A DNA stretch of 45,246 nucleotides, taken from positions 1 through 45,246 of the forward strand of contig JAHLWZ010000927.1 in NCBI GenBank assembly GCA_020536535.1, written 5' to 3'. The notes under the pieces are model-generated. The model saw nothing but the letters and a program-made list of their open reading frames with translations, searched no databases and had not been told where the DNA came from. The translations under genes and the position numbers were made by a program. Source of the stretch: Pelomyxa schiedti (lineage: Eukaryota; Protista; Evosea). Positions 160 through 33,913 of this stretch are shown in pieces. Within the stretch, counting starts at the first letter, position 1; each line of letters starts with the position of its first letter.

Positions 160-636
160 CAACATTCTCTAAAACCCAAAACAATCATCGTGCAGCCTTG
201 ATCCTGTTTTTGCAAATCTTTGAGTTGTACTACACAATTTTACCGCAAAAAAAGACTGAGAAATTTAATTTTTTTTTCCGATATCTCACCAACAGTGCCT
301 GCTTGCCCGTGGGTGTGTGGTTGTGTCGTTGGGTGTTGTCAAGCATTGCCCAAGGGGCCCTGCCGTTCACGAGGAAAATCTATTTTCCCCGAACAGTAAA
401 ATAGTGCCATCAATGCGAAGGTATCTCTTTGAGTTGGATACCTGGTGGTGGCGCTGGAGGGATGCCCACGGTTCTGCTGTGGTGGGCCCGAAAATCCACA
501 ACAACGATTGGGCAAAGTGGTTGTTGCTGTTGGACGGCCTGCTTGTTGTTGGTGTCCCTCGTCGTCGTCTACAACACCACCGCCACGTGCCTCCTCCTCC
601 AACAACACCAACACCAACACCTTGGGTGTCACGACG

Positions 637-1846
637 ATGAGGGACCAGGTGCCCTGGTCGTGGGTGCGCACGCCCGCTGCGGCTCCAGCTCCCCTTTGTC
701 ATCGTCGCGCTTGTCCCTCGTCGACGCGGCGAGGGTGCTGTGGTCGTGGCTGACGGCCGCCACGAGGCACTTCTACGTCGAGTGGTGTACGTCGGACTGC
801 GCGCACTCGCGGTGTCGCCGCCGCTGGCGTCGCTGGCGCGCCCCGCCAAGTGGTGGGCCAAGTACGGGTGGGCCAGGGAGCCGCTGATTGGGGCCAGCCG
901 CTGGTGGTGCACCGCGGGCCCGACTTGTACCTGAGGGACCAGGCCACGGCGCGGGCCGTGGCGCCTGTGGCCGGACCAAAGAGGAGGCCGGGGTGGAGGT
1001 GCCACACCAACGGCAAGTGGTTTGTGTGCCACGACCCTACTTCGGGGGAGCTGGAGTGGTCGAGCTGCCACAGAGCACGCCACGCCGTTGGGATGTGGGC
1101 GCCGGTGGCGGTGGCGGTGACCCAGCGCAGGCATCACTGTTGTTGTTTTTGGCTGTTGCGGAGCGAACCACTGTGGTGCCCACACTGGAATTTGGTGGCA
1201 GGAGTGCTTATGCACTCGATTTCTTTTGTGGGTGTGGGGATGACCACTTGCTGCTGTGCTTTCGCTGTAGACCTGAATTGAACGACCCCCCTTGGTTAGT
1301 TCTGGTGGACCTACTGCAAACCAGTTTGTCAAAGAAACTTGTGGTTCTCAGCAAAACCACTCCCCAGATTGGCTTTACATGGCGCAATTGGTGCTGTGTG
1401 ATGGCCAAACAGGACGGGTCCCATTCATTTGTGATTAAGAGGCCCAATGGGCAATTGAGGAAACTACAGGCAAAGCACAGATCATTCGTTCCCAGTGTGG
1501 TGCCGAAGAACTCTCAGTGCCACAACATAAGGGAGGGGGGGTGTCATGCCTGAGTCAGTCACTGTTTTGCCTCTTCGATTCTTGTTACAGCAGTGAGGGG
1601 GACCCTTCTTCTTACTACGAAGTGTGGGACATCAATGACACAAGCAAGCCTGTGAGGACAATGAGGTGCCTCCCTGGTTGCACTGCAGACAACACGTTTG
1701 TTGAGGGTGGCCTTTTGTTCCAGGTGACCAACGCCAACAAAGAAATACACGTTACCGAGGAGTCGTCTGGCACACACGTCGTCACACTGAACCTGTTCAA
1801 GCCCCTCAGTGCCATCACCAACCATTACTCCTTCCTGGAAGGATAA
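637..1846 (+). pseudogene. Lineage-specific 'RDQ..AHARCG..SP' family gene (beta-rich C-terminus), frameshifted
   Basis: MRDQ (637) runs into ALVVGAHARCGSSSPL only by a frame change; further frame changes at about 770-930; C-terminal exon YEVWDINDTSKPVR…GGLLFQV…IHVTEESSG ends at 1846. Confidence 0.55.
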
Positions 1847-2142
1847 CCACCACCACCGAAACAAGATTACAGATAACAGTGTGTTTGGTGATGGAGACAA
1901 TGACTGGGTGTGTGATCACCAATGGGATTTGTAGGTGGAACCAGCCAGATTACTGGTGTCAGAATTGATGGTGAATCACAGTCTCAACTCAGCAGCAAGT
2001 TGAGGTTGTGCATTGCTCCATCGTGTCGTGAACGGTCCAACTTTTTTTTTCGCACTTGTGTTTTGTGCCTCAATGCACTCACCTCTGTTTAAATTAAAAC
2101 AACCACCTGGCACACTGCTGGTGTGGTGGTTAATGAACGAAG

Positions 2143-5100
2143 TCAGTCAACAGATATTGTCACAGAGTCACCAATGTCAGCCATGGCAACGGCAGGGAAC
2201 AGTGGTGCATCAACAATTTGGCTGAATGCAACACCCACGTCAGTACCCTGCGGTTTTTTTCCCCAGCATTAGTGGGGTGGAGAGGGCAACAGAGAGGTGA
2301 ACATAACACACATTGATTACGAACGCAGCAGTGTGTGCGTTACTGTCAAAAATGAGGATAACGTCCTGTCCAGCTGACTTGCATGTTACACCGTTTGGTG
2401 GCTGGGTTAAGGTAACCACACCAGTTACTTTTAACCCCGGCTGATGGAAGTTGTTACTATGGTCCATGGAAAAGTCGCCACATTCACAGCTGTAGCAGGC
2501 ACCATACCCAGAGGAATTGGAAGGACGGGCTGCAGTGGAACTAGAACAACGAGCCATAACGTAGCTCGACCATAAAATACCTGTATGTTCTGAGTAAATG
2601 TTTGGGGGAAGGCACAACAACCTGTTTGGTTGAAACCAAACCCAAGCCTTCCACTCAGTGTCTTGTTGATGTGGAATCTTATTCTCACAATTCCACAGCT
2701 TTGCAGGTTTAAATTTGCAAGAGCCATCCACCATAAAGGAGAACTCCCTGTGTTAGTCACAGTGTGGTTGGAATCTGACAGGTTCCAGCAAGGAGGACAT
2801 GCCACTGCAACAAAGGCCAAACCTCCAACTTGAAGAGCTGCTTGATGAGTTAGAAACGAAAGTGATGGTTTCACAGGAGAAGACCTCTGCAGTTCTGTTC
2901 TGATGTGGCTACTTGTGCAATTAACTCTTCAAGTTTTCTTAGGAGATACATACACCAAAGGAGAGGTACAATGCTTACCAGTGATTTTTAATGTGGAGCT
3001 CGCAAGTTGCTGATTTAAAGTTAATTCCTTCATAGCCTGAGCTTGCTTCTCTTGATGTAACTCTGATTTGTCAGTAAAAAAAAAGTGTGAGATGACTTTA
3101 CTTGTTTTTTCCTGCTCTAAAACAGCGAGTTGCTGCTGTAGCCCTCTGCATTTCTCTTCTGAGGTTGTTACTTGTTCAGTCAATTCTGTAAGGTTTCTGA
3201 GATGCAAAGATGAGGAAACAACACTTACGGGTCAAAAAGTTAGTTGCTCTCTCAAGCTCCTCCTGAAGTGATGTCTTTTCTTGTTGTACCTCTGGGCAAA
3301 TGTTACCATAAAGGAATAGGCAGTGCCATACATACTTGCATTTTCTTGGTCAAGTTCTGTTACCTTCTGTTTGAGTTCTTGACATCTGTTATTCATAATA
3401 AGTTCGAAGATTATATGCCTTGAATGGTGTTGTTTGCCTCCTGTAACTCCTTCCTGAGATTGGGCTTGGAGTTCAGGGCTGAAACGTGTCCAAAAAACTA
3501 TTATTAAAAAAACAAAAAGCAAAGGAGATGAACATTTGAAGTCAACAGGGACTGCAACATGTGGCACAACAACTTGAGTATGCTGCAATGATTCCTTGAA
3601 TTTTGGTTGGAAGTGAAGAAACCTGCATTTCTTTTGTCAAATTGGGATGAAGTCACGTATTTGTACATGTTTGTAAATAAGAAGTCATCTAAGTAAGACT
3701 CAATAATGGTTGGAAGAGAGTGGGATGTACTCACCTTTAGAACTGGTGTGCATGGAAAGTAACTTCCTTGAAAGTGAAGCAGAATTTACTGATTCATGAA
3801 TCAACTTTGTGACACTCCCAAGTTTTTCAACAAGTTCTGCTGTTCTGCAGTGTGAAAGTGATTTTATCTCCGCAATGGCCTGCAAACTGAGTCAAATTGG
3901 ACTCCATCAGAACCCACATAACCTTTTCTTCCTCTTGGTGCATCTCTAAAATGACTTTGGAATAATGCCCCTGTGCATCATAAATTTCATGTGCAGCTTC
4001 TGTGAGGACAGTTTGAATCTCCTCGAGGATTTTCTTCCTCTGTTGAGTGAGTGTAGAAACGCCAACATCAAGATAATTGCAAAGTTGTGTGAGTTGCTCC
4101 TGGAGAAGGGTGATTCCAAGTAAACTTGCAAGAGTTACTGTAACCTTTGTTCGAATCACAGCATCGGGGAGTTTCTCTTTGGCGTGACCTTCATGTTCAC
4201 CAAGTTGACTGCAATAAACACACACTAACTGTCCAGGACGACCTTGTGGAGCGCAGGTTTTGCAAAGAAGGATGCGAGGTTGACCAGAATGCTGTGATTG
4301 TGTGCAGAATGGTGATGTCTCATGCAGAGGAAGCAACAGTGCAAGTGAGGAATGTGTTGGAAATTCCCCAAATAACTTGAATCTTGGTGCTGTGTCAGTC
4401 TGACCAGGTTGGCTCTGAGGTGATGTTAGTGCCTTGTGTGTGAAGCTGGTATTCCAACCTGTTGTTGGGTGTCACACTCAATCAACCGGGCTTTTTGGAT
4501 GAAGTGACCATACAACTCCACCGTTGTGGTGAGTTCTGCATTTGAATGGAAACCCACCATAAATGTGGTAGGCTTGATTTCCACATCCACAATAACTGGA
4601 GCCATGGAGATGAGTTTCTGTAAAAATGAGACAGGTGTGAAGACTGATGGTGTGTCACACCTCCAAGCAGACTCTTAAGGGTTTCCTCTTTTTGAGGAGT
4701 TCCATTGGAGTTGAGTGATCAATTTCGGTTTTGCACTGTTCAGCCCCAGTTTGAAGTTCGTTTTTGAGAGTTGTTATCACAGTTTTTTTTTCTTCTAGAA
4801 TGCCTATTGTTAAAAAGATGTTAGCCCTGAGAAAAACACCACTGTATACATTTATCCATGCAGTGTGAGGATGTTTGAGCAAGTAACTCCTTCTTTCTTT
4901 TTGCAATCTTTTCTTCAATATCCTTAAATGCTGCATTTATGCTCTGTGTGAATGTGGCCACCTCTTCTTCAAGGAGTTTTTCTGTGGTGTCAAAATTTTC
5001 AAGTGCAGAGTTCAATTCAATGATTTCTATAGAAGAGTTATCCTGGCAAGTGGAAAAAGGTGTGAATTACTTTGAGTGACAACTGACTGCAAATATTGGA

Positions 5101-5769
5101 GTTCGATCTGGTAATTGGGATTTTAGTGGCAAAAGTAGTTTGTATTCCCCTGAACCCCAAACATGTTTTCACTCACTTTGGTTATTTCTGCTGCTTTTTT
5201 GATCCCTGAAGCTGGATGACCCATGTGTTCTTCTTCCTTGTTGTAATTGAGAAATTAAATGTGGAATGCATTGCAACACCTTGCAGATAGAGCAAATCAA
5301 AGCTTCACAGCATGTGCAAAACAAATTTGCTTTCTCTTCTGGGTGTACAGCACACTGTGACCAAGTGGGTAGCCCAGAGCACAAGGTAGTAACACCCTGT
5401 GGCAATTCATTTCCGCTAGTGCACAAAGTAAAAAAAAAAAACCATCAAAAAAAAATTTTACCATTGCTGTGACTGTCCGGTACCTGTGTCCACACCAAAG
5501 GCACTCAGAATAGCAAAGAGTCGCGCGTTGCATGGAGCGTCATGAGGAACCGACACTGTCCCGCACACTGGGCACCACAGCCTCTTTATCTCCACCGCCT
5601 CCACCACCGCGTCCACTGCTGCGCCGGTGTTGCTACTTACAACCGGCGGCTGCTGCTGCGAGGGGCAACACGACCTACAAGCAGAATGACCACACGGGAA
5701 ACATATGGGGTCATCGAGAAGCCGGTGGCACGACAAGCACGTCAACGCTACCCTCAACTGCCCCTCCAT
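2143..5769 (-). CDS. TRIM-like E3 ligase: RING - B-box - coiled coil - second B-box - coiled coil - SPRY/B30.2
   Basis: ATG 5769. RING CLSC…CGHSACRSC…CPVC; B-box CAVH…FCTCCEALICSIC…HMGH; second B-box CTQSQH…CKTC…CVYC…HEGH, joined in phase by an intron at about 4406-4449. SPRY: WNLSDSNHTVTN…RLGFG…GQDVILIFDSNAHTAAFVIN|GTDVGVAFSQIVDAPLFPAVAM…DSVTI, stop 2143-2145. Some central coiled-coil exon boundaries were not resolved. Confidence 0.75.
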
Positions 5770-6242
5770 TTTTTTTCCTGGTTTGATGATCACCAAAACC
5801 CTTTTGGAAGAAGTGGACTGTAGTGTCCACTCACAGCAAAGGGGATACCAGAGGCCAGAGGTATTTACTGTGAATGGGAGAGGGAGATGATGTGTTCCAC
5901 CCTATTTGTAGAGTCCGATCGTTGCTTTCCAGGCCATTTCAAAGCTCTTAACAAGCAGAGAGTGATTTAGAACAAAAGATACGAGGGTGCCATGCAGATA
6001 CAGCCAAGAAAGCAGGGGACGCCACCCATAATGGCAACGACGGGCAGCACAGCCTGGCGCAGCGGGGCACGTGACCAACGCAGAGCATCGCAATTGCCTG
6101 CACACAACTCATGGTCGCAGTCGTTGTTGCTCTCATCGTCATCGTAATTTGGCGGAATAAAAAAAACAGCAGACCGCCGATACTGAGCGACATCTTCGTT
6201 CCGTCATAAAGTCTTCAGTCGTCACTGTGAATTAATTTTACA

Positions 6243-7288
6243 TTACACAACGCCCCTTGTGTCATGATGTGGATCGCTGCAATCACCAGGTACAGATTGA
6301 GGCAGTACAAGCTTTACCCAAAGAATTGGAAGGAAACCCCGCTGACCATTGCTGCAAAGCTCTCCTTCCAGCCAGTCATTTGGCTCCACGTCAATCAGCC
6401 AAATGTGGTCCCCCTTGGTAAAATTTAGAAGTGTAGCTTCTGGATCTAGGGGAAAAAATCTGAGCCCAGTGTGCGTGGGTGGTGAAAAAAAAAAAAGGAA
6501 CCTGTGTCTGAATAATCGTAGAGAGCCACAGAATCCAATTTGAAATCAGTAGTGGGTACAACAGTCCCATCTGGCATCGTCTGAGGTGGAGGTGGCACAC
6601 TGGGCATTGGAGGTTCTTGGACGCGCATACTCATGAATTCCGCATACTCCATAATGAAGGCTACAGCTTCTACACAGGAAGGAGGAACGTGCTCCGTGAA
6701 CTCATATGAAGGCCGTAGAAGGTATTTCGCAAATAGTTCTGCCACAAAGTTTAGCTGAAGACCACTGATGTACAAATACGACGCCAGACTAAAAACTATG
6801 TTGCGGGACACAGGAGGGAGCATGTGCAGCAAAACGCGCATCTGGAGTCCTCTGTTTTTGGGGTTTGGTATCTGAGCCACACGCAGCACAGTGTCGTAAT
6901 ACCAAGGTGGGATCACCGGATGTGGCAGCATTTTGAAGTACAGAAGCAAAACGCCAGCAACTACTTGCATGTCGTGTTCCAGCACCGCGGGGTGGTCCCC
7001 AGTGGGATTGCACCCGAAGTCGTCGAACTTAATCTTAAGCTGTTGTATTCGGCTGTCATCCGTGTTCAGGTCGAACAGATCGAACTGAGCGGGTGCGTGG
7101 GCAGACAAGACCTCAAGAGTCTTTTCAACAGGAACTGGAAGTGACGCGCCGAATGGCACGGCGCGACCCAAATTGCGACCGAAAACTGTCGCCGCGGGGC
7201 GAGGTTGTTCTATGTGTGGGGAGTCTGTCACATTTTCCACGTTAACGTTAGCAGCACCCTTCCAGCAGTCTAAGAATTTCCTCAACAT
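6243..7288 (-). CDS. RhoGAP-fold protein with C-terminal SH3 domain (arginine finger apparently absent)
   Basis: VFGRNL…LPVPVEKTLEVL…VAGVLLLYFKMLPHPVIP…LPPVSR…LFAKYLLRP (RhoGAP); after one intron ALYDYSDT|DPEATLLNFTKGDHIWLIDVEPNDWLEG…GFLP (SH3); TAA 6243-6245. Confidence 0.8.
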
Positions 7289-7457
7289 TGTTTGTTGGAA
7301 CAAGAAAGGCTTGATGGTGAGATCTTCGTCGAAAAAAAAAAACATTTTTTTCGAATGGCCGATGTGGTGGTTTCATGGGTCATGAGCGCGTGTGCCACAG
7401 GCCATGCTTGTCTGATCGTTCTGTGCCGGGTAGTAGTGTTGAGAAACCTTCGGAAAT

Positions 7458-7537
<80 letters not shown>
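7458..7537. repeat. (GACAAC)n microsatellite, about 13 units
   Basis: Perfect hexamer array read directly. Confidence 0.95.
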
Positions 7538-7612
7538 GCGTCACGCTTTTTTATTGTTTTTCCGGCTTGCCAACAGCACGGAAACAACCACAAAAAGTTT
7601 TGCTGCCTTGAA

Positions 7613-8990
7613 ATGAGTTTTTTCACAAACCTGAGCGGGTTCACCACAGCGTGCGCGACGGGGCACCTCGATCCGCGAGGGCTACGTTCCCGTCGTCGAC
7701 CGTATGCTCCGCCTCCCCGCCGTAGGCTCCGTCCCTTCGACCTAGAGAGTAATGGCAATTCAATCACCAGATTCATTCTCGAATGAGACACTCGAACATC
7801 GTGAGATGCCTTGGGACATGAGTGACCAGCACTGGTGGACTCTGGATCGTCTCCGAACTCATGGAAATGAACCTGAGGCAGCTCCTTCAGCGGGTTTGTT
7901 GTGATCGTTCTCTATTCCTCTCCAGATAATTGGCAAACAGAGAAGTTTGAGCTTTCAGGAAATCGTTGCACTCTCGTTGGGAATTTGCAGAGGAGTGGCC
8001 GCACTTCACAAGTACTGTTTAACCCAAATTTTACTTGGATGATGATGTTCATCAGGAGGAATATCATGCATCGCGACTTGAGCAGCAACAATGTTCTCCT
8101 GGATTCTCATGGGATTCCAAAGATAACCGACTTTGGTTTTCAACACTCCATTTTCCGATTACTTCATGACAGTATCCATGCAACAGGTGTGTCACGTGTT
8201 ATCAGAAGTACACTTGTGTCCACTTTTTCCATTGCCGGCACACCCGTTTACGTGGCTCCGCAGATGCACACTCGTCACTATGGAGTCCAAGGTATTTACC
8301 CCACTTTTTTTTTCTTGTTTATCCCCACCATTTCGCACAGGAGATATGTGGGAAATTGCGGTTTTACTGATTGAGATGCTGATTGGAACAATATCAGAGT
8401 TCGGACTTACGAAAGTTCAAAACAAATAGCCGATTTTATTAGAGAGCTGAGGGCATCACTCTCCCTTGACTTTGCCGGTTAGTTTCTTTCTTCCGTCATC
8501 TGTGAACGCACTGGCTGAAAACGCACATACAGAAGCGAATCGCCTTTGCAAGGAAACCGAAGGTGGCGATATTCCCATTGCAGAGTGCCTCATACGGCGG
8601 AACGCGATGCTCGAGGCACTGAAATGTGAGCCCAAGTTTTCCAACATACACCCGACTTGCGTCCGGCTGTTCTGCCTCGTCGTCGAGTCCTGCCTATCCA
8701 TTCTTGGTTTGTTTCCTCCCCGCCACGTCACATTTCTTCACACCCAATCTCGCCTAGTTAATGTTCCTTACATTCAGCCACCCAAACTGACATCACACAC
8801 AGAGTGCAACCGGCCGCCGTTCCGTGCCATTGAAAAGGAGATCATGACGTGTGCACAGCTCGCGGTTGGATCGTGGTCTGACGACGACGATCACGTGGAA
8901 TCTTGCGTTGCCCGCTGCCTCGCCTCTATGGTCGAATCTTCATCCCCCTCTTCTTCTCACCACGGCAGAACGGCCTTGTCATCGTCGTAA
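7613..8990 (+). pseudogene. Internally deleted copy of the ankyrin-UBL-kinase gene (20897-24381)
   Basis: 7613-7745 matches 20897-21120 with a gap and is fused directly to sequence matching 23139-24381 (HRDLSSNN, DFG, GTPVYVAPQ); frame disrupted near 8400-8430. Confidence 0.85.
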
Positions 8991-15376: not shown

Positions 15377-16778
15377 GTTGTTACGTCTGGTTTGATGTTG
15401 TTGGACGCGTTAAAACAGGCGCCTGCCAATTGAGCCGCTTTTTTTTTTAATTGATTCACCACCAAACAGCATCCTTCCAGTTCACTCCTCTTTCCGTGAT
15501 CAAACACTTGTGTTGTAGTTCTGAAGGTGATGTAAGCCGGCATGACGAACAATAATGAACACAAGGTTCACCCCTGGCTGATGTTGGCAATTCCTCTCTG
15601 TCAAATTGGTGAAAGTGATCCGGTGCTTGACCACACTCACAAACACAGACACAGACACAAACACACCGATAATGGAGAGGCATCACTGAACATGAGGTCC
15701 CCCACTGTTTCCAGCAATGCTGCTCACAGCCGTCGAAAGCGGCAATTTGGGGAGAGTGTGTGAAATAGTTCACAGCATCAATTACCGTGCGCAATCGCCG
15801 GCTTCAACCAAACTCACCAGTTTCAAATCTCAGTCTTCTTCTGAATTGATTAATTTAGAGAATTTGAAACGCACACTAAAGTCACTACGAGACAGACTGC
15901 ATCGAGTATAGAGTGATCACATGCCGGAAATAAGGTGGAAGCCACTGGAGAATGCCCGAAATACTGCGACAAGCACAGAACTGGGCATATGCTGGCGTAT
16001 TTGGCACTTTGGCACTTTGGCAGTTTAAGACCTGTGTGTCTGTTAAAGACATTGGTGAACTGTAGTCGCAGTAATATATTATCAAATAATTGATAATTGT
16101 TTGTCCTAGTAATTGTTGTTGTTTCAACACAGGTAATTCTAGGGCACCAACTCACTATGTGCAAAGGAATTTTGGTTCTAAATTCAAAGTGGCAGCCAAC
16201 AACGGAGGAGTTTCACAATAACTGGCGAACATAAGCCCAGTTACTCTGTCAAGGTGATCCTACACTCCGCGTACTGATCCACTCGCGTGTTAACAGAAAA
16301 AAAGAATGTTATGTATATAATATTAGATAATTATGAGAAGAAGCTGGCACAATAGTAAGTTTCCATTTATCTTCTCTGTTTTTCTTTTTCGACTTCTCAC
16401 ATTTGATAACAGGTGGTGTTTTAGATGTTAGTTGAGAGGCAGACAGGAGCAGAGAGACCTGAAGGCAGAAGTGGGCATGCACCCAGTAGAATGTGTGCAG
16501 CTCGTTTCTTCTTTTCCTCATTTCACCTTGTCCTACTTGTACCGTTGTAAATCCCCTCTCCCTTTTCATTGTCACCCCACTCAAACATAATAGGTACCCT
16601 GGACTGACACCGCCCAGGAGAATGGTGTGCAGCTCTGCTCCGTGTTCCTCAGGTTTTCACTTTCAGTGTCCCCCCGTATGGCCTCACCTCCACTCCCAGG
16701 TTTTTTTTTCCCACATTCAAACATCTTCTGCATTTCCAGCCTTCCTCACTTGGCCCCTACATGCCAGAGAAACTCCAA

Positions 16779-16996
16779 GGGTGTTATGGAACTGCTTACA
16801 GGTGCCTTCACACTCCATCATCAAGACGAGTTGCTGTGAAGAAACTTTTTGAGGTTATTGCATTAGATCGCAAAATTCAAGTTGGAAGCTGAGGTTTTTG
16901 TTTTTGCTTGTAAGGAAAAATAACCCAACAAAAGTGCATCTTCAGATCACCAGGGGGCTGAGGCATCCCAACATTGTGAGGTGCCTTGGGATCTGA
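16779..16996 (+). pseudogene. Inverted kinase N-lobe fragment copied from the MORN-kinase gene
   Basis: GCYGTAYRCLHTPSSRRVAVKKLFEVIA…KFKLEAEVF…LRHPNIVRCLGI* mirrors 13480-13710 on the opposite strand, with a frameshift and a stop. Confidence 0.8.
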
Positions 16997-17420
16997 TGCT
17001 ATTCAACAACAGATTCAATCAGATCTATAATATACACATTGAATTCAAAGAATAATCGGGTGATCGGACATAACAGCACTGTAACAACAACAAGAGTGTG
17101 GACATGGAGCGTTTTCACACACAAGTGAAGGAGTGCCTCACGTAAAACATCAACCAATGCAGTCTGCCTTTGAGAAGGATCACTTGATGAAGAATGTTTT
17201 TATCTTGAAGTATGTTCACTCTCTCCTCAAAGTGTAAATAATCCCTGATTTTTACTTACTCTTCTTCTTCTTATCTCAAGGTATCCTGCTCACTTGGAAG
17301 TCCCTGAAACCCCAAAAAGTGTTCTTTTCTGAAGTTTGGCAAAGAAAGAATCACTGACTACCACTGTTTCATGTCCAATCCAGGCAGCTCCCAGATAATC
17401 TTGAAAACAACTTCTGATGA

Positions 17421-17864
17421 GTCATTCCCAGCACTGAGGGTAACCAACACCAGCGTATGGTTGCTTCTTACACTGCTGACCCTCAGCCTGGACAGCAGGG
17501 CCAAGAAGACCACAATCGGAACCACCACCACCATAGCCACAGCCGTCAGCAGCATACCCAGCAACCCCAATCACAACAACAGCGGCTGCAAGCACAAGCA
17601 CAGGCCCTCAACACTTTGCCAGTTCTGTGTATGGCAGCACAGCCCACTGTCATCACCACACCCCCACCACCTTGCACTTACGCACAAGTGGTACCACATC
17701 AGGGAGCCACTGCTGCTGCTCCCCAGGCTCAATCACAGTTGCTGCAACAACTCCATCAAGGGATGTGCCAGAACCGCCAGCAACAGCAGTATCATCACCC
17801 AACGCAATCTCCCAAACAACTGTCTGACAGTGTCTCTTCCTCCCACACCACTCGCGATGTGTAA
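17421..17864 (+). CDS. Gln/His-rich low-complexity exon of an unknown gene
   Basis: Open Q/H-rich frame (…QPGQQGQEDHNRNHHHH…) ending at 17864, convergent with the PARP gene; upstream exons unresolved. Confidence 0.35.
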   Translation, partial: VIPSTEGNQHQRMVASYTADPQPGQQGQEDHNRNHHHHSHSRQQHTQQPQSQQQRLQAQAQALNTLPVLCMAAQPTVITTPPPPCTYAQVVPHQGATAAAPQAQSQLLQQLHQGMCQNRQQQQYHHPTQSPKQLSDSVSSSHTTRDV

Positions 17865-17920
17865 CAACGTGCTTCAAGGAAGACACAAAAAGAGGAGAAT
17901 AGTTCAAGCTACATCTTCCT

Positions 17921-20416
17921 CTAAGTAAAAGTGGAGAGCTTGGTGAGGAACGACGGCTGGGGCAGGGATGGCTGTGGCAGGTCCTCTGGGCTGCGAGTGT
18001 ACACGACGACGTACTCGGAGTACGCCTGGTGCTTCGCGTACAGCACGATCTCGCGTGCCTTTGGGTTCCTCTCTGGGGCCACGGCGGCCTGCCTCGCCGC
18101 GTCGCACTGGTCGCACCTCTCCGCCACCACGGAGTCGTACGACAGCCCCGTCGCGTCGTTGGTGGGCGGCTTGCGCACTGGGTCCGCCAGAGTCCCGCGG
18201 TATTTCGCCGCCGTGTACTGCGATTGTGGGATTGTGGGAGGTTAGAGTTTGATGAATTTTGGGTTGGCTTACTGCATCACAGATGTGGGCGTCGCCGAGG
18301 GCCGCGCGGAATATAAGCATGCTGCATTCCACGGCTTCCGGGGCTGCGCACCGGCAATAATGGGTGGGAGAGCGCATTTCGTAATCGGCTTCTTGGTTTT
18401 GATCTGTTATTGCTGTGAAGTATTCAAAAGGGGTAGAAAAGTATGAATCACTGGCCCTGGAAGTGGCAGTAGAAGTAGAAGTTGTAGTCGTAGTTGTGCT
18501 TCTTGAGTGTTCTTCTTCACGGCGGCACGGAAGGTGGCACCTCGAGCAGGGGATGTACCAGTTTGACTTGGAAGAATTTTCGGCGAGGTAGAAGCCTGCT
18601 CCAAACATTCCTGTGATGTTGGACACGCGGAAGTCTGCTCCCTCTCGCGTTAGTTGTGACAGCACCTCACTTGAGCACCCATGAAAAAGGAGATATTCAT
18701 TGACTGACGAGTCCAGGAGCGAGGTCTGCATCGGCTTGTTGCTGAGGTACCTAGACGAAGGCTTTGCTGCTGCATTTCCAGACACTCTTTCTCTCAGAAT
18801 ATTTTTATAGTTGGTGTATGACTCCCACTGAAGTCTATCTTGGATCCGTATCACTCTTCTCACTTTCAATCCACCAGGCCATTTTCCCCTCACACACCCA
18901 ATTTCTAAGATGGGTTGGAAAGGCAGGTTTTATTGGTGGGAACTAGTCATATATTGTAGTGATGGAAATAAAATGTAAATACTTGATGAGGAGTTCTTTT
19001 CGTAAGTGGAGTATACCAATGAATTGATGAACTTGAATTCATCCGATTCTTGGCCTACCTCCACTTCTCTGTGTCCTGTTCAAATATGAACCGTAAAATT
19101 CAAGAAAGTAAGGCCCTAGTACCCGTTGGTCCCCACGGATCTGCGCCCCAGTACCGTGGGGTCCTGGAACATGTAAACCCTTCCGTCACTTGAAATTCAG
19201 TTCCCCATTTAAGAACTTTCTCCGAATCCACAAGTTCGTCATCAAACTACTAGAGAATCAATCAGGAATTCTTTAAAAATGGGAGAACACAGACCTCAGG
19301 GTCCATAAGGGCAAAGGTAGATGGATCTGCTCCGGTTCGCCTGCCAATGTTGACTTTCAATTCTCTGAAGGTGCTGCTGGGTTGGACTCTAAATTTTAGT
19401 TTCTCCAGTGTTGTTGTGGTCACAGTCACTAGAGTGAGACCTACCAGAGGAGGATGCAGATTAAGAAAGCGCTGTGCTGCAAGGATCGTTGAATTCAATA
19501 TTCGCATTACTATGAGGTCGGTTTTGTCATTTGTGCAGTCCTGATCTGCAGCGTAATTCGATATGAAAAAGACATCAGAAGGATGAGAGCCGCATGCTGA
19601 AGCAGCATATGATGCGATAATGTCCCGTTGTAGCTGCAATGTAATTGAGGCCTCATGAGTGATCACAACAACTGGAGCTATTCCCAACATCTGGAACCAT
19701 TTTCTCGGAATTTCCAGCGGTCTTACGAATTGGTTGTTGGCCAGCCTGGGATCGGTGGCTTTCATTACCCATATTACTGCATGTATGCGGTCCACGTATG
19801 GAATTTCTGGTCCCTGCTCGAAAGGTGAGCAGGTAGTTACGAAACCAAAGCCTACATACATCACTACGCTGTTGCTCTATGACTTTCTTAGCTTGGGTAT
19901 AATCTGACACAGCCTCATCTTCAGGATCCCATTTAACTATGTCTCCGTGCTGGTACATTCCCTCGATAATTCTTACGCAAGCCATTCCTTCAGCAGAATT
20001 TAAAGTGAACAAGCCCCTTGTGTCAACCAAGGTGATGCCCTTGGATATGGGAACATCTTCGACACGTACTGTTCCTTCCCACTCGCTCATAGTCCCCGGT
20101 CCTTTTATTTTACCAACTGTGGGAAACAATATGCCACAGAGTTAGGTCGAACAAGTACCTTCAAGAGCTCTGTCAATTGTGTTGATCAAGGAAGTCTTCC
20201 CTGTTCCGGTCTGACCCAGCACCGCAACCCGTATGCGTTTTTTCAGCTCTGGTTGTCCATCAAACACCTTTTGGTTGGGTTTAACGGGTCTCTTACGAGG
20301 GCTCGTTCACAAGTTGTCAAAAAAAAAAAAACCTCAATGCAGTGAGGGAAATCATTAACGTTGGTCCCGGGCACGAATCTCTTGATGTGTTGTCTGTGTT
20401 CTTCAATCTCAAACAT
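17921..20416 (-). CDS. IFI44-like P-loop GTPase - ubiquitin-like domain - tankyrase-type PARP (ADP-ribosyltransferase) fusion, at least 704 aa
   Basis: Exons 20416-20333, 20267-20159, 20116-19860, 19813-19295, 19246-19123, 19075-18983, 18904-18273, 18217-17921, all GT-AG and in phase (2115 nt). RIRVAVLGQTGTGKTS, LVDTRGL, DRIHAVIWV, VVVITH, SDVFFISNY, ILAAQRFL (IFI44-like); KFRVQPSSTFRELKVNIGRRTG (UBL); NEYLLFHG, GMFGAGFYLAENSSKS, RKPP…YDSV, REIVLY…YSEYVVVY (PARP). The true start may lie further upstream (to about 20660). Confidence 0.85.
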
Positions 20417-20896: not shown

Positions 20897-23800
20897 ATGA
20901 GTGGAATTTTGGACTGGTTCACTCTCAGAATGACCGGGTTCACCACAGCGTGCGCGACGGGGCACCTCGACCGCGTCGAGCTTCTCATCACGTCGACCAA
21001 CGCCCACTTCGACCCCACGGAGATCTCCCGCGGCCTCGTGTCGGCCTGCCGCGGGGGCCACGTTCCCGTCGTCGCCCACCTCCTCCGCCTTCCCGCTGTT
21101 GGCTCCGTCCCTTCGACCTACAGAGGCTCCCTCAGGCAGCCCATAAACTACGCCGTCCCATGCGATGGAATTATTAGAGGCACAGGCTCAGCCTCAGGCA
21201 CGACGCCCGGCAGCCCCCCCGCGGCAGGAGCAGGAGTGACCACGGCAGCGAGCGCGGCGCCGCCTGCAATAGAGACGGCGCTCGGGGCAGCGTGTCAGGG
21301 GGGCCATGTGGACGTGGTCAGGCTGCTGCTCGGGGAGCCGGGGATCGACGCCGGGGCGGGGAGCCCTCTGTGCCTCGCGTGCCAGGGGGGGCACGTGGAA
21401 ATAGTCAACATGCTGCTGGGGAAGCTGCTCGACACCATCAGCACCGACGAGATTGGCAGGAGCTTGGTGGCTGCGTGCAAAGGGGGATTCTACGAAATCG
21501 TGGCGGCGCTGATGGGGCTGAAGCCGCACATGAAGCTGAACTTGCTGTTCACTGTGGTTGCTGGAGAGACTCCGCTCTGCGCGGCTTGCGGGACCGGCCT
21601 CTTGGAAGTTGTCAACTTGCTGCTGGAGGCAATGGGAAACAGCACTGTTTACACCAGGGATATATCAGAAGCGTTTGTTATTGCGTGCAAGGGTGGCTAC
21701 GTTGACATCGTCAACAAGTTTTTGAGCTTGCCACGACACATGAGGCCTTCTCTCGCACACACGTCGAAGCTGGATAGGACTGCCCTGAGTGCTGCGTGTG
21801 AAGGTGGGCACCAGGCCATTGTGGACTTGCTTCTAAGAGAAGACCTTGATGTCAACCTTGGAAACCCACTGTGGCACGCCTCAAAGAACAATCACTTGGA
21901 AATTGTTATCAGTTTATTGAGGAATCCCACCATTACCGTGAACAAAATGCTCGAGAACAAAACGCCACTTGTCGTTGCCATTCTTGACAATCAGATTGAC
22001 AAAGACTTCCTTGTTGCCCGAGTGCTGATTTCACATTCTGGTTTAATTCCACCGCATTGCCAAGAAGATGTTGTACGCAAACTTGGGAGCTATCAAAAAT
22101 TTTGTGAGCTCTTACAACTCGGTAAGATCAAACAAATGATTAGTTGCTTCGAAATTAACGTGAATGATGCAGCAACCAGTATTGAGCTTGCGAATTTATT
22201 GTTGGATCGCCAACACCCAAGAAGTTGAAATTTGTTTCCATTTGATTTTTCTCACATCTTTTTAGATTTTCAACCGTTAATAAGGAGAGAAAGTGACAGG
22301 GAAGCAATTCTCGAACTTAATAAGAGTTCCAGGCCGCTGTGTTTTTGAAAGTACTTACACCCTCCAAAGAGAATGCCGAACTGGAAGCGCGAATCATAAG
22401 AATTCAGGAAGAAAGGGCATCGGAGTTGGCAGAAAGCAAACTCAACCAACAGATGTCTTATGAAATCCAAAATTGTGTGTATCATATCACTCACTACCCA
22501 ACCCTTAGTGAAATTGCTGTGTCAACCATCTATCAGACACCGATCACGTGCTGGCACATATGAAAGGGGGCTCGTGGTGCAATGTACTCCCTGACGGCAG
22601 TTGCAAGATGGGCCAAATCAAGATTTCGTTTGAGGAGTATCCCTCATTTGATGAAATCGTGTGCTCTTCTTGCCCTCTCGACATGGTACTGTAATGTACT
22701 TCTCTCTCTGTGATTTATTAATTTTCTCTGCTCCCAAAGGCTGTGAAGATCATCATCACAAGAAAGTATGGTGTTGACACCAACGAACTAGTCGTTACAG
22801 CGGTTGGAGCAAACAACTCATCAGAAGAACTGTTGACGGATACGAACAGAACCCTGTCAGACCTTCAGCAAGGCAGCAGTGGTGCTGACAGGGTTACATG
22901 GATGAAAGTCAGAATAACTTCCCCGGTGAGATTCCAAGAGAGCGACCTAAAAGTGGTGAGCACACTGGGGGTGGGGTCATATGGAACTGTTTTCAAGTGC
23001 CTCCACATCCCAACAAACACATTCGTGGCAGTGAAGGCTCTTCACGAGGCTATCCGGTCCGAGTTCAACAACGCCCGTTTTTTGGAGGAATTCGCGGTAT
23101 TTTTGTCCACCATCCTCCACAAAGCTTTTTTTTTGAAAGTAATGGCAATTCAATAACCAGATTCATTCTCGAATGAGACACCCGAACATCGTGAGATGCC
23201 TTGGGACATGCGAGACAAGCACTGGTGGACTCTGGATCGTCTCCGAACTCATGGAAATGAACCTGAGGCAGCTCCTTCAGCGGGTTTGTTATGATCGTTC
23301 TCTATTCCTCTCCAGATAATTGGCAAACAGAGAAGTTTGAGCTTTCAGGAAATCGTTGCACTCTCGTTGGGAATTTGCAGAGGAGTGGCCGCACTTCACA
23401 AGTACTGTTTAACCCAAATTTTACTTGGATGATGATGTTCATCAGGAGGAATATCATGCATCGCGACTTGAGCAGCAACAATGTTCTCCTGGATTCTCAT
23501 GGGATTCCAAAGATAACCGACTTTGGTTTTCAACACTCCATTTTCCGATTACTTCATGACAGTATTCATTGAACAGGTATCTCACGTGTTATCAGAAGTA
23601 CGCTTGTTTCCACTTTTTCCATTGCCGGCACACCCGTTTACGTGGCTCCGCAGATGCATACTCATCACTATGGAATCCAAGGTATGTTCTCACTTTTTTT
23701 TTTCTTGTTTTGCCATTTATCCCCACCATTTCACACAGGAGATATGTGGGAAATTGCAGTTTTACTGGTTGAGATGCTGACAGGAACAATACCAGTCGGA

Positions 23801-29143: not shown

Positions 29144-32100
29144 ATGGCAACCAATTCAGTGCCCGCAGACGAGTGGGAGGCGTCGCTGGTTTCTAGTCTC
29201 ACAGAGGACGAATTTGACCCAGAAGACGTGGACGCGGTGGTCCTGGCGTGGCGCTCGCTCCCGCCCACCAGCAGGACCGCCTCTGGCTTCCTCGCCAAAT
29301 TCCCCAATGCTGCTGCGCTGGTCTCCGCGTGTCCCAAGTTGCGCCTCCGAGACGCCCGAGTGGTTACGGAACGCGTGCGCGAATTGTGGGAGGCGAGCGG
29401 GTGGACCGGCGCGGTTTCAAGGGCCGCGGCGCGCCGTGGCTTCGACAGGGTGGTTTTGGGTCGGTTGTGCTCCGCGGTGGCTGAGAGGTTCGACTCTATA
29501 GACGCCTTCGCGTAAGTTGAATACAACTAAAATGGGACATATAAAAATTTAAATAAAATATAAAATTTTCGACATTATTGACGGTGATGTACCCCTTTTT
29601 ATTAAAACTCAAAAAGGTGCGCCATTGCACACCCTGAGCTGGAGGAATTTGGTGCTGTTGGAGCAGAGACTCTGAAAATAGCTCGTACTTTGGTGGCAAA
29701 GAAATCGCTGTCATCACTTTCTAACATATCACGGCTTCGTGAAGAGGCGGAGCAAAAAGTTGCAGAGATTAGGCATCTCTCCAAGGCTGTGACAGATATT
29801 CTCAAGCAGTATTTAGCTGCTTCCGAGTCTGATTCCCATAGCAGCAATTCTCGTCTAAAGGCTGTTATGCTGAAACATCTCAGCTCTGATCCTGCAGCTT
29901 CCCTTCCTGGACCCTCAAGTGAGGAGCTTGTGACTCTCCTGGTGATTGGCCAAACGAATTCCGGCAAGTCTCAGTTCATCAACTCCTTGCTGCAATGCAA
30001 CCTGCTACCTGTCTGGGCCATCTCATGCACAGTATGTATGACTGTCATAAAGTATGGTGTCCAAAAGAAATACCGTCTCGGAACCAGGGAGGCGTCTGGT
30101 TCTATGCAAATCTCTTGGGGGGAATTAGTGAATATACGTGAGACTGCTCCCTCCGGTGACTTCCTCCTGCCAGCAATTGGACGAGACACAAAGGGTGAAG
30201 TGGACCTTAGTGTTACTAACGTTATACTGGAGGTCTTTTGGCCACACCCTTTGTTGCAAGCTGGTGTGCAGCTTGTTGATTCACCAGGAATGCTTGAGTC
30301 ACCTGAGCTTGAGAAGATTGTTTTTGACTATGCGCAAGGGCAACGCCTGGGCGTGATATGCCTGTTTGATTTGGCCACTGGTGGCCTTCCTGCTCACAAG
30401 CACTTCATCACTAAGTTGAACTTGGACCCAGCAACAATCTTCTTTGTTGGAAATAAAGTGGATACAGTTCGGCCATATAATGGACCTATTGACCCTGTAG
30501 ATAAGTTGTTTCACTTCACACAACAAGTCCTCGAGCAGATGGGGGAGCGGTTATATGATAGCCCTGACAATTTCCCCCGGTTTTCTGCGTATTCATCTTT
30601 GGAAGCATACCTTCTCAGTCAAAGTTCTGGAGACCAGGTGGAACCCCTCAAAGAGCCTCAAGCCATATTCTCCTTCAACGCGAAACTGGTGGATTGGATC
30701 AAAGCACTGTTTAATCGCTCGCTAGTCGCTGTGACTTCGCAGCTTCTTGACGCAGTTTGCACCCTTTCATCTGTAAATCTCATTACGTGGAACTACGCCG
30801 AAATAGAGCCGAAATTGCGTGGATGCTGTAAAAACATGAAGCTGGACTTTGAGGCAATGCAAAAGTCCATGATACCGATACTGCAGGGGCATGTCGAGGG
30901 TTTTTGTGAACATGTGTCAAGTGCTGACTCAATAAGAAAGATCAGTGAAAAAGTTACCAATGAACAAAAACAGATTGGAATGCAGCTATTTTCTGATGTG
31001 GACGAAGTAAGTTCCATAGTGAGCTCAGTACTTACCAACTACACGAACGCACTTCAAATGATTACAGCAGATGTAGTGAGAGACCAGTTTTTTGAGTTTT
31101 CCAAAGACTTTTTCAACCTCTTTACTGAGCAGTGTCAAGCAGTTATTCAGAAGTACGAGACTCAGCTAACAACTTTAACATTAGATTTTATCTTTTCAGA
31201 AAAGAGCCACCGTAGATTCTATGGTGGTACAACAGTAGGGTTGATTGCTGCTTTTGAAGCACCTTTTATAGCAGCATTTGCCCTATTAAAAATGTACGTA
31301 TTAACTGTGGCAAAGGTCTTGAAAGTGGGTCATGGGAAACTTTCTGAAGTTCAGACACGTGAACTGATGGTGCAATATAAAGTCAACAAAGTGAAAAGCA
31401 CAATTGCGATGATCACATCAACCCTTTCCCAGGATGCCCTCGAGATGATGCGCAAGTCCTGTGAGAACTATATGGTTGGCTTAGAGGCCCAGATTGATTT
31501 CATCTTGGAATGCATTAAGGCCAAAAAAGTATCAAACCTGCAGGATAGTAACATCTACTTTGTTGGAGTGCAACTACTGTCAATGATTTGTTCCCTCAGG
31601 TCACTTTCACTGCAGTCTGGCCACCAGTTACTCCCAGAGAAACCAGACATTTTCCACGGATTGCTTTTTGACAACTCGGTTCCTCTTTACCCAACAGAGC
31701 AACATGTTGTTGTCAAGAACTTCACCTTTTCCATGCTTTGTGATACAAACCGTACCTGCATGCACTTGTTTCAACAGTGGGCACTGGACCACCCCAATAT
31801 TTTGAGGCCCTCTTTCTTTGCACTTTCTCCTGATAGATCTTCCTGTCAAGTGGCATTTCCCTTCCTTCCCTTCACCTTGGATGAGTACAGAAACACATTT
31901 TCCATAGAACCTCCTTATAGTTCTACAAGTCGTGTCCAACAAGCCTATGATATTTGTGATGCAGTTTACTTCTTGCACAAGCATGGCATAACACACAGAG
32001 ATATCAAACCACAAAATATAATGGTCAATATGCAAGGAACTCCATTTTTGATTGACTTTGGGTGTGCAAAACCGGTTGCACCCCAGAATCTTTCAACTTT

Positions 32101-33913
32101 TACTGGTACACCAGGGTACATAGCCCCAGAGGTGTATGATGGTCGATATGACAACCGTGTTGATGTTTATAGTCTTGGGAGGACACTAACGCAGTACGAA
32201 AACCCAAGTGCTGTGGTGACTCCACCATCTCCACTGAATGATTTGCTCAAGAAGATGTGTATCAGTAACCCTGATTTGCGACCAACTCTTATGGATGTGA
32301 AGACCCAATTAATTGACATTGGAAGGAGGCTGAGCTTGGCCAGACCAGATGGCAAATATAACATCTTAAGTCTTGATGGTGGAGGCATGAGAGGACTTGT
32401 TGAGATAGAAATGCTGATGATGATCGAGAAAGCAACGGGAAAGAAAATTTGGGAACTCTTCCATTTGATTTCAGGCACAAGCACTGGAGGGATTTTAGCA
32501 ATTGCAATTGGCTTGCTTCATGTGGACTTAAATACCCTTAAGCACTTGTATATGACCTTGGGCCCAAAAGTGTTTGGGCACGGGTTTAGCAAAGCACATA
32601 ACGCATTTTCCTTCATGTCATCTCTCAGCTTTCAGCAGTATTCAAGTTCAACTCTAAGGGCTTTACTGTCATTGCACCTTTCTGGCCACAAGTTTCTGGA
32701 CTTTCAGCATTGTATACCGAAAGTATTTGTTACCTCAACACAGATTACAAGCAACATATCAGATATGGTGCTCTTCAGATCTTACCCAATCCCTTTTTAT
32801 GAAGGGCGAAACACAAGTGCTCCACGTAGGTCTGCACCAAACTGCGAATTGATAGATGGAGCGATGGCAACTGCTTCTGCACCAACTTATTTTGAACCTG
32901 TTCACATTGAACAATGTCCCTATATCGATGGAGGCCTGCTTGCAAATAATCCCACACAGGAAGCAATAAATGAGGCAAAGTTGCTGTGGCCGAACGCTCA
33001 TTTAAATCTGTTGGTATCGCTGGGGACTGGAAAGACCACTCAAAACATAGCTGTACCAGCAGAGAAAAACATTTCTCTTTTCCAGCTGGCTGAATCACTT
33101 GTTTCCATAGTAACAGACCCGGAAAAGATACATAGGCAAATACAGCTACAAATGGCAGAAAAGCCAACAGTAACATATGTTCGCTTGAATCCTGAGCTGC
33201 CCATTGATCTTCTGAAGATGGATGAATCCGACAAGGGACACCTAAGACAGATAGTTTCATCTACAAATGTATTTCTGCAGGAATCTGCCGCAGCATTTGC
33301 TCACATTCTCTCTTGCCTTGGAGTTAGTCCTCCTCAAGACGCTCCAAAACCCATACACAAAGGTATCACGGAATGGCACCCACATATGGAATTCCTTTTT
33401 CTCCCAGAGACTTCATCCCAAGACCTACGTCAATGTGTTTCCCGGCACTGTGCACAAATGAACCAGTGCCCCTTTGCTCCAAACGACAACCCAGTTGACT
33501 CCTTGTTCCTCCTCATTACTCATGCCATTCGTTCGGATGGCAATGCCATGGACTTGAGCAAATCAGTGGCAAAGTGGTTTTTACGCAATACTCAGTTACC
33601 TCTTGCAACCGGCAAGTCTCTGGGTGAAAGCTGTTCAAAGTTTTGGAGCACCTGTACTGACGCAACTTTGCTCCTCAGACTAAGTGCGGAATCAATACCG
33701 CATATACTTCCGTGGCTGCTGTATGTTATCGCTAACATTCATCCACAGCTGTGCTTGGTACTTGTAGCTGCCGCGAGGCCGCAATGTGTCCGCTTCGGCA
33801 GTGGCAATGTTGTTGTATCCTTGGCTCTTGATTTTGAAAAGGAACAATCTGAGCCACCAACAGAGAACCCTGAGGATTCCCCTGCTTCACAGTCAGCTAC
33901 CGTGAAGGTGTGA
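29144..33913 (+). CDS. Dynamin-like GTPase - Ser/Thr kinase - patatin phospholipase fusion (1554 aa, single intron 29512-29616)
   Basis: Exons 29144-29511 and 29617-33913 join in phase. G1 GQTNSGKS (29948), G3 DSPG (30278), G4 NKVD (30452); kinase HRDIKPQN (31994), DFG (32054), GTPGYIAPE; patatin DGGGMRG (32375), GTSTG (32474), DGG (32927). Confidence 0.9.

Follow-up and report, generated by a model that had tools for sequence, protein, structure and literature searches.

The contig JAHLWZ010000927.1 of the free-living anaerobic archamoeba Pelomyxa schiedti (Amoebozoa), analysed here as one stretch of 45,246 nucleotides (the window), carries on its minus strand (20416..17921) a gene whose eight exons, separated by seven introns, form one open reading frame (ORF). 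The predicted protein combines in a single chain a probable IFI44-like G domain, a ubiquitin-like domain (UBL) and a catalytic domain of the PARP family that appears to be of the tankyrase type. Conservation of the whole chain was shown for five genes or more, from Archamoebae and environmental eukaryotes. To judge from these sequences, the protein would best be classed as a new PARP architecture and as a new effector-bearing form of the IFI44-like G-domain family. The explanation that we favour for the protein as a whole, with moderate confidence, is that a switch G domain and a UBL would be coupled to a tankyrase-type PARP output, in a conflict, defence or stress-signalling role.

The coding pieces of the gene are spread consecutively over three reading frames between 20416 and 17921. 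They are separated by introns of 65, 57, 46, 48, 47, 78 and 55 nt (from the first to the seventh), all of which begin with GT and end with AG (7/7). Translation of the joined exons reproduces every residue of the public P. schiedti protein KAH3744315.1 (699 aa, hereafter P0001), which was named "Interferon-induced protein 44 [Pelomyxa schiedti]" by its depositors. For introns 2 and 3, a second in-frame AG is found 15 nt and 3 nt upstream, respectively, and a protein of 705 aa is obtained when both are used. This explains why a previous reading of the window (the sequence-only reading), which had proposed seven GT-AG introns splicing in phase, gave the length of the product as at least 704 aa. 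Alternative splicing at these acceptors, as deduced from the sequence, could add the residues VGKIK and Q to the protein. The alternative acceptors lie at 20101-20117 and 19813-19817 on the minus strand and the public model takes the downstream AG at both; the upstream acceptor of intron 2 has a better pyrimidine tract (tttcccacag) than the downstream one. The P. schiedti genome contains 7.43 introns per gene, 98.4% of them of the GT-AG type, and its gene models were obtained with Augustus and refined by PASA/EVM on transcript data (PMC8887013). The motifs that the sequence-only reading had quoted from the window, from the P-loop to AAQRFL and further on FHG, GMFGAGFYLAENSSKS and REIVLY, are all present in the protein; both the gene structure and the motifs are confirmed. 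When the window was searched by tblastn, this locus alone was matched, and no second copy of the gene was detected.

The three domains had been proposed to follow each other in a single chain, and the comparison with four further sequences agrees with this proposal. P0002 (683 aa), an environmental ORF, fills two independent 2.1-kb JGI contigs without interruption. P0003 (652 aa) is encoded by a single TRINITY transcript of the archamoeba Mastigella eilhardi and carries all three domains. A search with the G-domain region led to a second Pelomyxa gene, P0050 (765 aa), a paralog with the same order of domains. Finally, an ENA (European Nucleotide Archive) metagenome contig, L001, encodes the full chain in three frames at 4474-6527, with a further G-domain copy downstream (7264-7864). 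The window protein and these four sequences align end to end, across the exon junctions and the linker that joins the UBL to the PARP domain; the N-termini of P0050, P0002 and P0003 begin, in the alignment, at the position equivalent to the start of exon 1. Residues W351, G352, W356 and G357 of the linker are invariant in all five sequences (pattern WG.DPWGP.G). As the alignment is full-length and includes this linker, with intron 5 inside one of its codons, a merger of two genes is very unlikely.

We considered in this respect whether the chain could be an artefact of the gene model, adjacent G-UBL and PARP genes having been wrongly fused in the annotation. At the L001 locus a prokaryotic gene caller indeed predicts two products, one of 419 aa and a PARP product of 209 aa, and family members without a PARP domain exist, such as P0018 and P0025, the latter made of a G domain and an apparent UBL-like C-terminal stretch. 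However, the ORF is full-length and uninterrupted in the Mastigella transcript and in the two JGI contigs, the linker is conserved around its split codon, and there is neither a stop nor room for a promoter between the G-UBL and PARP parts. In addition, the public gene model was refined with transcript data (PMC8887013). The reading as two separate genes was therefore rejected in view of the uninterrupted orthologs and the conserved linker, and we regard a fusion created by the annotation as highly improbable.

The motifs of the G domain are the P-loop GQTGTGKT (aa 46-53), DTRG (91-94), DRIHAVIWV (153-161), ITHEA (196-200), FFISNY (227-232) and AAQRFL (257-262). The family is rare: an exhaustive HMMER search using exon 4 as query detected 44 proteins at E<=1e-3 among 1.84 billion representatives, and the top-scoring ones resemble the window protein in length and in the order of their parts. 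In an alignment of 27 sequences, G46, G49, G51, D91, G94, D166 and T197 are invariant, and the invariants specific to the family are H156 of DR(I/V)H, the D166-P-(R/K)-L motif, T197-H198 and N231 of FFISNY. The G4-like motif of the family is (V/I)TH.D, the Asp being present in at least 90% of the aligned sequences.

Among proteins of solved structure, septins are the best full-domain relatives of the family profile, with E-values of 4e-9 to 1e-8 over about 170-220 positions. A Foldseek search with the confident model of the G domain returned septin-9, GIMAP2, Toc34, EF-Tu and EngB, with template modelling (TM) scores of 0.35-0.58. With the Pfam Septin profile (PF00735), P0002, P0004 and P0027 scored 20.8, 17.0 and 23.8 bits, respectively, against a cut-off of 26.2, and P0001 gave no match. 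The IIGP/IRG profile (PF05049) matched the P-loop stretch only (16-21 bits against a cut-off of 24). More generally, the Pfam matches to MMR_HSR1, RsgA, IIGP and Septin were all sub-threshold and mostly covered the region from the P-loop to about G3, and those obtained with PADLOC and NCBIfam (LeoA, RsgA, YqeH) concerned the P-loop region only and were far under the cut-offs. The sequence-only reading had named Ras and AIG1 as the unrelated families that might match better. Neither AIG1/GIMAP (PF04548) nor Ras (PF00071) was matched by full-length family members at E<=0.01, and neither was among the 25 Pfam matches listed for the P-loop exon. Assignment to the septin, AIG1, Ras or IIGP family was thus rejected, none of them reaching its Pfam threshold. 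Given the septin profile matches and the Foldseek neighbours, with no Pfam family above threshold, the G domain is probably a distinct TRAFAC family located in or near the septin/GIMAP-like group.

The relationship to IFI44, which the sequence-only reading had put forward, finds indirect support for the G domain. Three relatives bear the RefSeq name "interferon-induced protein 44-like": XP_019628879.1 of Branchiostoma belcheri, and XP_070553848.1 and XP_070552681.1 of Ptychodera flava. The window G domain matches XP_019628879.1 with 116 bits (32% identity over 242 aa) and XP_070553848.1 with 105 bits (29% identity over 234 aa), in both cases over the entire domain, and the name given by the depositors to P0001 is in line with these matches. 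By contrast, the TLDc domain is absent. IFI44 has been listed as TLDC5, with a putative N-terminal TLDc domain (PMC5614904), and no Pfam match to TLDc was found in P0001 or in any scanned family member; only about 40 residues precede the P-loop (aa 46). The absence of TLDc speaks against full membership of the IFI44 family. In IFI44, G1 and DxxG are present and G4 is incomplete (bioRxiv 10.1101/2020.02.24.963900), which fits a family whose TH.D departs from the canonical (N/T)KxD. Homologs of IFI44 are induced in a cnidarian antiviral programme (PMC13319465). "IFI44-like G domain" is thus a probable designation, which rests on the matches to invertebrate proteins so named in RefSeq. To our knowledge, interferon is restricted to vertebrates and the host has no interferon system.

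The middle region had been predicted to be ubiquitin-like, and the structural models agree with this prediction. With the Pfam ubiquitin profile this region scored 17.2 bits, under the cut-off of 25.4, and the scores of its polyubiquitin matches in the PDB are summed over repeats. In the full-length AlphaFold2 (AF2) model, residues 40-340, which cover the G domain and the UBL, have a predicted local distance difference test score (pLDDT) mostly above 90; the UBL region itself is above 90 and shows the order beta-beta-alpha-beta-beta. When the UBL was modelled alone, from seven homologous segments, the mean pLDDT was 85.7 and the order beta-beta-alpha-beta-(short helix)-beta. Compared by Foldseek with ubiquitin, NEDD8 and SUMO, the UBL model gave TM scores of 0.75-0.84 and root-mean-square deviations of 1.6-2.3 A, as expected for a beta-grasp fold. 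The UBL is internal: after its end, ...EFQVTEGFTC, the chain continues with the linker and then the PARP domain, and a C-terminal Gly-Gly is lacking. The UBL is therefore a domain and not a conjugatable modifier. A UBL-like segment is also found after the G domain of P0019, P0018 and P0025, suggesting that the G domain and the UBL form a recurring unit.

The PARP domain was detected by Pfam PF00644 (cut-off 26.7 bits) with exon 7 alone (36.3 bits) and in P0001 (38.3), P0002 (42.6), P0003 (40.8) and P0050 (30.0). In phmmer searches of the PDB at E<=1e-3, the only matches were tankyrase-1/2 and, much weaker, PARP12, so that the closeness to tankyrase stated here is a comparison with solved structures and not a phylogeny. 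The E-values of the tankyrase matches were 1e-8 for the exon, 9e-10 for residues 355-699 of P0001 and 5e-15 for P0003. The alignment with tankyrase-2 is collinear in three blocks, of which the first comprises the N-terminal helix and the first strand, the second runs from llfHG to GMFGAGfYlAENSSKSN.Y and is near-identical, and the third is the C-terminal rEivlY..qAY.EY. Residues H465 (in FHG), Y496 (in GMFGAGFYLAENSSKS) and E657 (in REIVLY) align with lfHG, GAGiY and the E of aEYVIY in tankyrase-2, and the H-Y-E triad, which is that of polymerising PARPs, is kept in five out of five family members (P0001, P0050, P0002, P0003 and L001). The PDB matches and the alignment of these three residues thus support the view, already expressed from the sequence, that the PARP domain is tankyrase-like with an intact His-Tyr-Glu triad.

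Directly after the SKSN.Y block lies a conserved cluster, C-x2-C-(H/K)-x2,3-C ... C-x-C, which is split by a low-complexity insertion. In four proteins the residues C152, C155, H156, C160, C177 and C179 (P0003 numbering) do not vary, and L001 retains the Cys residues, with Lys replacing His. The insertion differs in length: it is longest in P0050 and also much longer in P0001 than in P0003 and L001, where it is short. We take the zinc site of tankyrase to sit where this Cys-rich loop lies; by analogy, the loop may be its equivalent, which we regard as a lead only. A Pfam scan revealed neither ankyrin repeats nor a SAM domain in P0001, P0002, P0003 and P0050. As judged from these comparisons, the protein is tankyrase-type in its transferase domain and is not a tankyrase by its architecture.

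The G domain is associated with other effectors in its relatives. The Pelomyxa protein P0019 (KAH3766473.1) has the order G-UBL-coiled coil-kinase; in P0009 of Branchiostoma belcheri (KAI8487014.1) a TIR domain is N-terminal to the same G domain; and P0027 of Ptychodera flava (XP_070553852.1) has SH3-SH2-tyrosine kinase C-terminal to it. Several members of the family stand alone. Another Pelomyxa protein, P0011, was named TRIM56 by the depositors, and no Pfam domain was found in it. On the Pelomyxa contig JAHLWZ010001057.1 (L002), P0025 (456 aa, no PARP) lies head-to-head with P0050 at 413-5091. A UBE2O-like E2 (ubiquitin-conjugating enzyme) gene is located 2 kb downstream of this pair. Side-by-side paralogs are seen at L002, on L001 and on a single Ptychodera chromosome.

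We propose a mechanism that follows the order of the chain, in which a probable TRAFAC-class G domain is followed by a non-conjugatable UBL, a Trp/Gly/Pro linker and a tankyrase-type PARP domain bearing a probably disordered insertion in its Cys-rich loop. By analogy with septins, GIMAPs and ROCO proteins, the G domain would act as a nucleotide-dependent switch or dimerisation module that controls or localises the ADP-ribosyltransferase, and the UBL would serve for docking or as a relay. The logic of the module would be that of a sensor or switch with a swappable effector, i.e. a PARP domain or a kinase after G-UBL, a TIR domain or a tyrosine kinase with the G domain. GTPases of the septin/GIMAP clade have been described as switches in conflict systems (PMC8195603, PMC7159879). 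It is plausible that GTP would gate the PARP domain and that the protein would be a defence enzyme. Since the effectors are swappable and the paralogs clustered, in a rare and patchy family with local duplication, a conflict, defence or stress-signalling role appears to us the most likely one, although this is the least secure step of the proposal: such a pattern is typical of conflict or stress-signalling proteins and does not by itself demonstrate a function.

Several observations weigh against this proposal. In viral contigs no relatives were found with the G-domain or PARP patterns, only two local G-domain matches, both weak and of about 80-90 residues from near the P-loop, came from prokaryotic genomes, and the metagenome contigs gave two weak loci at the level of the P-loop only. 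Searches of viral and prokaryotic sequences thus provide no genomic-context support of the defence-island type, and nothing in them points to an origin in viruses or bacteria. The link to IFI44 is made through names given by annotation pipelines and through pairwise matches to invertebrate, not vertebrate, proteins. In addition, human IFI44 kept its antiviral activity when its predicted nucleotide-binding (G1) region was deleted (bioRxiv 10.1101/2020.02.24.963900), so that GTP gating is uncertain even for IFI44. In the window copy, alone among its close relatives, the G4-like motif is THEA, with Ala at the position of the family Asp, the motif being THND in P0050 and THED, THDD and THCD in the orthologs. 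As the family Asp is lacking, guanine recognition is possibly weakened and its specificity uncertain; to judge from this motif, the nucleotide specificity of the window paralog may be relaxed or changed. The PARP half of the full-length AF2 model, obtained with four sequences, has a pLDDT of 30-45; with values under 50, this part of the model, the active-site geometry and the zinc site included, is of low confidence. Finally, tankyrase-type PARPs of animals act mostly in housekeeping signalling.

A housekeeping role, with the same architecture and no part in defence, is a serious rival. The tankyrase-like PARP domain would then mark proteins for turnover or for assembly control, the G domain and the UBL targeting it to membranes, the cytoskeleton or the ubiquitin system. 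Such a role is consistent with tankyrases being the only strong solved relatives of the PARP domain and septins the best solved profile matches of the G domain, with the lack of matches to defence-specific families beyond the P-loop region and with the lack of a viral or prokaryotic context. It agrees less well with the absence of ankyrin and SAM domains, with a rare and patchy family forming lineage-specific paralog clusters, unlike the distribution of a core housekeeping protein, with the TIR and kinase effectors of the sister architectures and with the IFI44-like names given to relatives by RefSeq, and on balance we hold it to be rather unlikely. It could also be that one of the modules is dead in the window copy: the G domain would be a pseudo-GTPase scaffold, as its THEA motif might indicate, or the PARP domain would be a mono-ADP-ribosyltransferase, or inactive, through an insertion that disrupts the acceptor or zinc loop. 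Whereas the loss of the G4 Asp in this copy only, the variable length of the insertion between members, the poor model of the PARP part and the activity of human IFI44 without its G1 region would be in keeping with a dead module, the P-loop, DxxG and the other family invariants are intact, the H-Y-E residues and the donor-site block GMFGAGFYLAENSSKS are nearly identical to those of tankyrase, and Cys residues are kept on either side of the insertion. We consider this alternative unlikely. A switch G domain with a UBL and a PARP output in conflict, defence or stress signalling is the explanation that we retain.

On a broader scale, the family hints at an antiviral-type switch older than animals. 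It is possible, and we propose it only tentatively, that the IFI44-type G domain and the UBL constitute an ancient pre-metazoan switch module which received its effectors lineage by lineage, PARP and kinase in Archamoebae, TIR and tyrosine kinase in invertebrate deuterostomes, the fusion then being a "Rosetta stone" for its output. If this were true, vertebrate IFI44 and IFI44L would be expected to work by way of ADP-ribosylation and ubiquitin-like signalling or jointly with them, and a tankyrase-type catalytic domain would be present outside animals.

The fusion had been thought not to have been described, and in the library that we searched no paper describing a GTPase-UBL-PARP fusion was found either. 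A broad survey of PARPs reports many accessory domains and no GTPase, the term "GTP" occurring zero times (PMC4245714). The sequence and the gene model are already public, and the precomputed Pfam annotation already shows the PARP domain; as the protein is a public gene model, the novelty is thus in the description and not in the sequence. Fusions of several domains are frequent among protists. The mechanism by which IFI44 and IFI44L, two prominent interferon-stimulated genes, act is unclear, and the fusion offers a testable hypothesis for the output of the G domain. It would also put a tankyrase-like catalytic domain into Amoebozoa, from which clade-4 PARPs had been considered absent, and could provide a small eukaryotic model, outside animals and plants, of NTPase-switch-plus-effector logic. 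Specialists of PARPs and of the evolution of innate immunity should find this fusion and the related architectures informative and directly testable.

Table. Coordinates, in the window, of the predicted features of the gene coding for the G domain-UBL-PARP protein.
Feature	Position	Strand	Basis or remark
Exons 1 to 8	20416-20333, 20267-20159, 20101-19860, 19813-19295, 19246-19123, 19075-18983, 18904-18273, 18217-17921	-	
Exon 1, start codon and N-terminal helix (aa 1-28)	20333..20416	-	AF2 helices aa 2-12, 24-30
G domain (about aa 29-262), exons 2-4 and introns 2-3	19463..20267	-	Family alignment, AF2
G-domain motif sites	P-loop 20216-20193; DTRG 20024-20013; DRIH 19792-19766; THEA 19663-19649; FFISNY 19570-19553	-	
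UBL, beta-grasp domain (about aa 271-341), split by intron 4	19178..19438	-	AF2, Foldseek
Trp/Gly/Pro linker WGADPWGPTG (aa 351-360)	19074..19150	-	Last codon split by intron 5 (phase 1)
PARP catalytic domain (about aa 361-677), exons 6-8	17990..19073	-	Pfam PF00644
Catalytic codons	H465 18683-18681; Y496 18590-18588; E657 18052-18050	-	
Cys-rich loop in PARP	18336..18551	-	PCSRCHLPC 18551-18525; YCRCAAPE 18359-18336; low-complexity Ser/Thr-rich core 18500-18459

Other features were observed in the window. An intronless ORF of 443 aa with ankyrin repeats (20897-22228, plus strand) is divergent from the gene, whose start codon is about 480 bp away. In tankyrases the ankyrin repeats are present in cis, and here such repeats are encoded in the adjoining gene; as the paralog locus L002 has no such neighbour, this may be a coincidence. 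A second ankyrin ORF is found at 39197-40201 (minus strand). At a distance of 9 kb from the gene, an uninterrupted ORF of 1407 aa (29690-33913, plus strand) combines Dynamin_N (aa 84-228), a protein kinase (about aa 699-833) and a patatin-like phospholipase (aa 893-1093), and is thus another unusual fusion of a GTPase with effectors. On the other side, a low-complexity ORF of 185 aa rich in Thr, Ser, His and Pro (17371-17928, plus strand) overlaps by 8 nt, at its end, the 3' end of the PARP gene coding sequence. Upstream of it, short ORFs at 16761-16996 contain kinase-like strings, e.g. HPNIVRCLGI. Pfam gave no match on the 185-aa ORF or on the 16761-16996 pieces; this region may correspond to a convergent gene whose 3' end overlaps that of the PARP gene. 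At 3827-4336 (minus strand), an ORF gave a weak, sub-threshold match to a B-box or UBR-type zinc finger (22.8 bits, the cut-off being 24.1). Over the whole window, whose fragmented ORFs are those of eukaryotic DNA, neither the Rfam nor the tRNA scan gave a match.

Compared with known systems, the window protein resembles vertebrate IFI44 and IFI44L, which are antiviral proteins stimulated by interferon, by its GxxxxGK(S/T) P-loop and its DxxG, and by a G4 that is non-canonical in both. It differs from IFI44 in having no TLDc domain, in the addition of a UBL and a PARP domain, and in a host without interferon. With tankyrase-1/2 (PARP5a/b, clade 4) it shares the H-Y-E triad and the near-identical GMFGAG.Y.AENSSKSN block; a Cys/His-rich loop comes after this block, at the place of the zinc site in tankyrase. 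Unlike tankyrases, it has neither ankyrin clusters nor SAM domain, and its Cys-rich loop contains a long and variable low-complexity insertion. The clade-4 tankyrases have been described as a metazoan innovation (PMC4245714). Septins, GIMAP (AIG1) proteins and Toc34 are the nearest solved relatives of the G domain by profile and fold, yet they remain sub-threshold in Pfam, and EF-Tu and EngB give similar TM scores.

A G domain that regulates a C-terminal enzymatic effector within the same chain is known from ROCO proteins (Roc-COR-kinase), such as LRRK2 and the Dictyostelium Roco kinases. The window protein is similar to them in the association of a G domain with a C-terminal effector, and its paralog P0019 even has a kinase after G-UBL. 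However, the G family is unrelated (the Pfam Roc match concerns the P-loop, with an E-value of 0.05), there is no COR domain and the effector is a PARP domain. The likeness to PARP9-DTX3L, PARP14 and PARP12, antiviral PARPs that work with ubiquitin-like systems, is that of a PARP domain in a multidomain protein of immune type, close to ubiquitin-fold chemistry; PARP12 was the sole PDB match other than tankyrase, and a far weaker one. PARP9, PARP14 and PARP12 are H-Y-(I/L/T/Y) mono-transferases or inactive, and carry macro, WWE or zinc-finger domains. The window protein differs from these antiviral PARPs in that its triad is H-Y-E and the partners of its PARP domain are a GTPase domain and a UBL located in the same chain.

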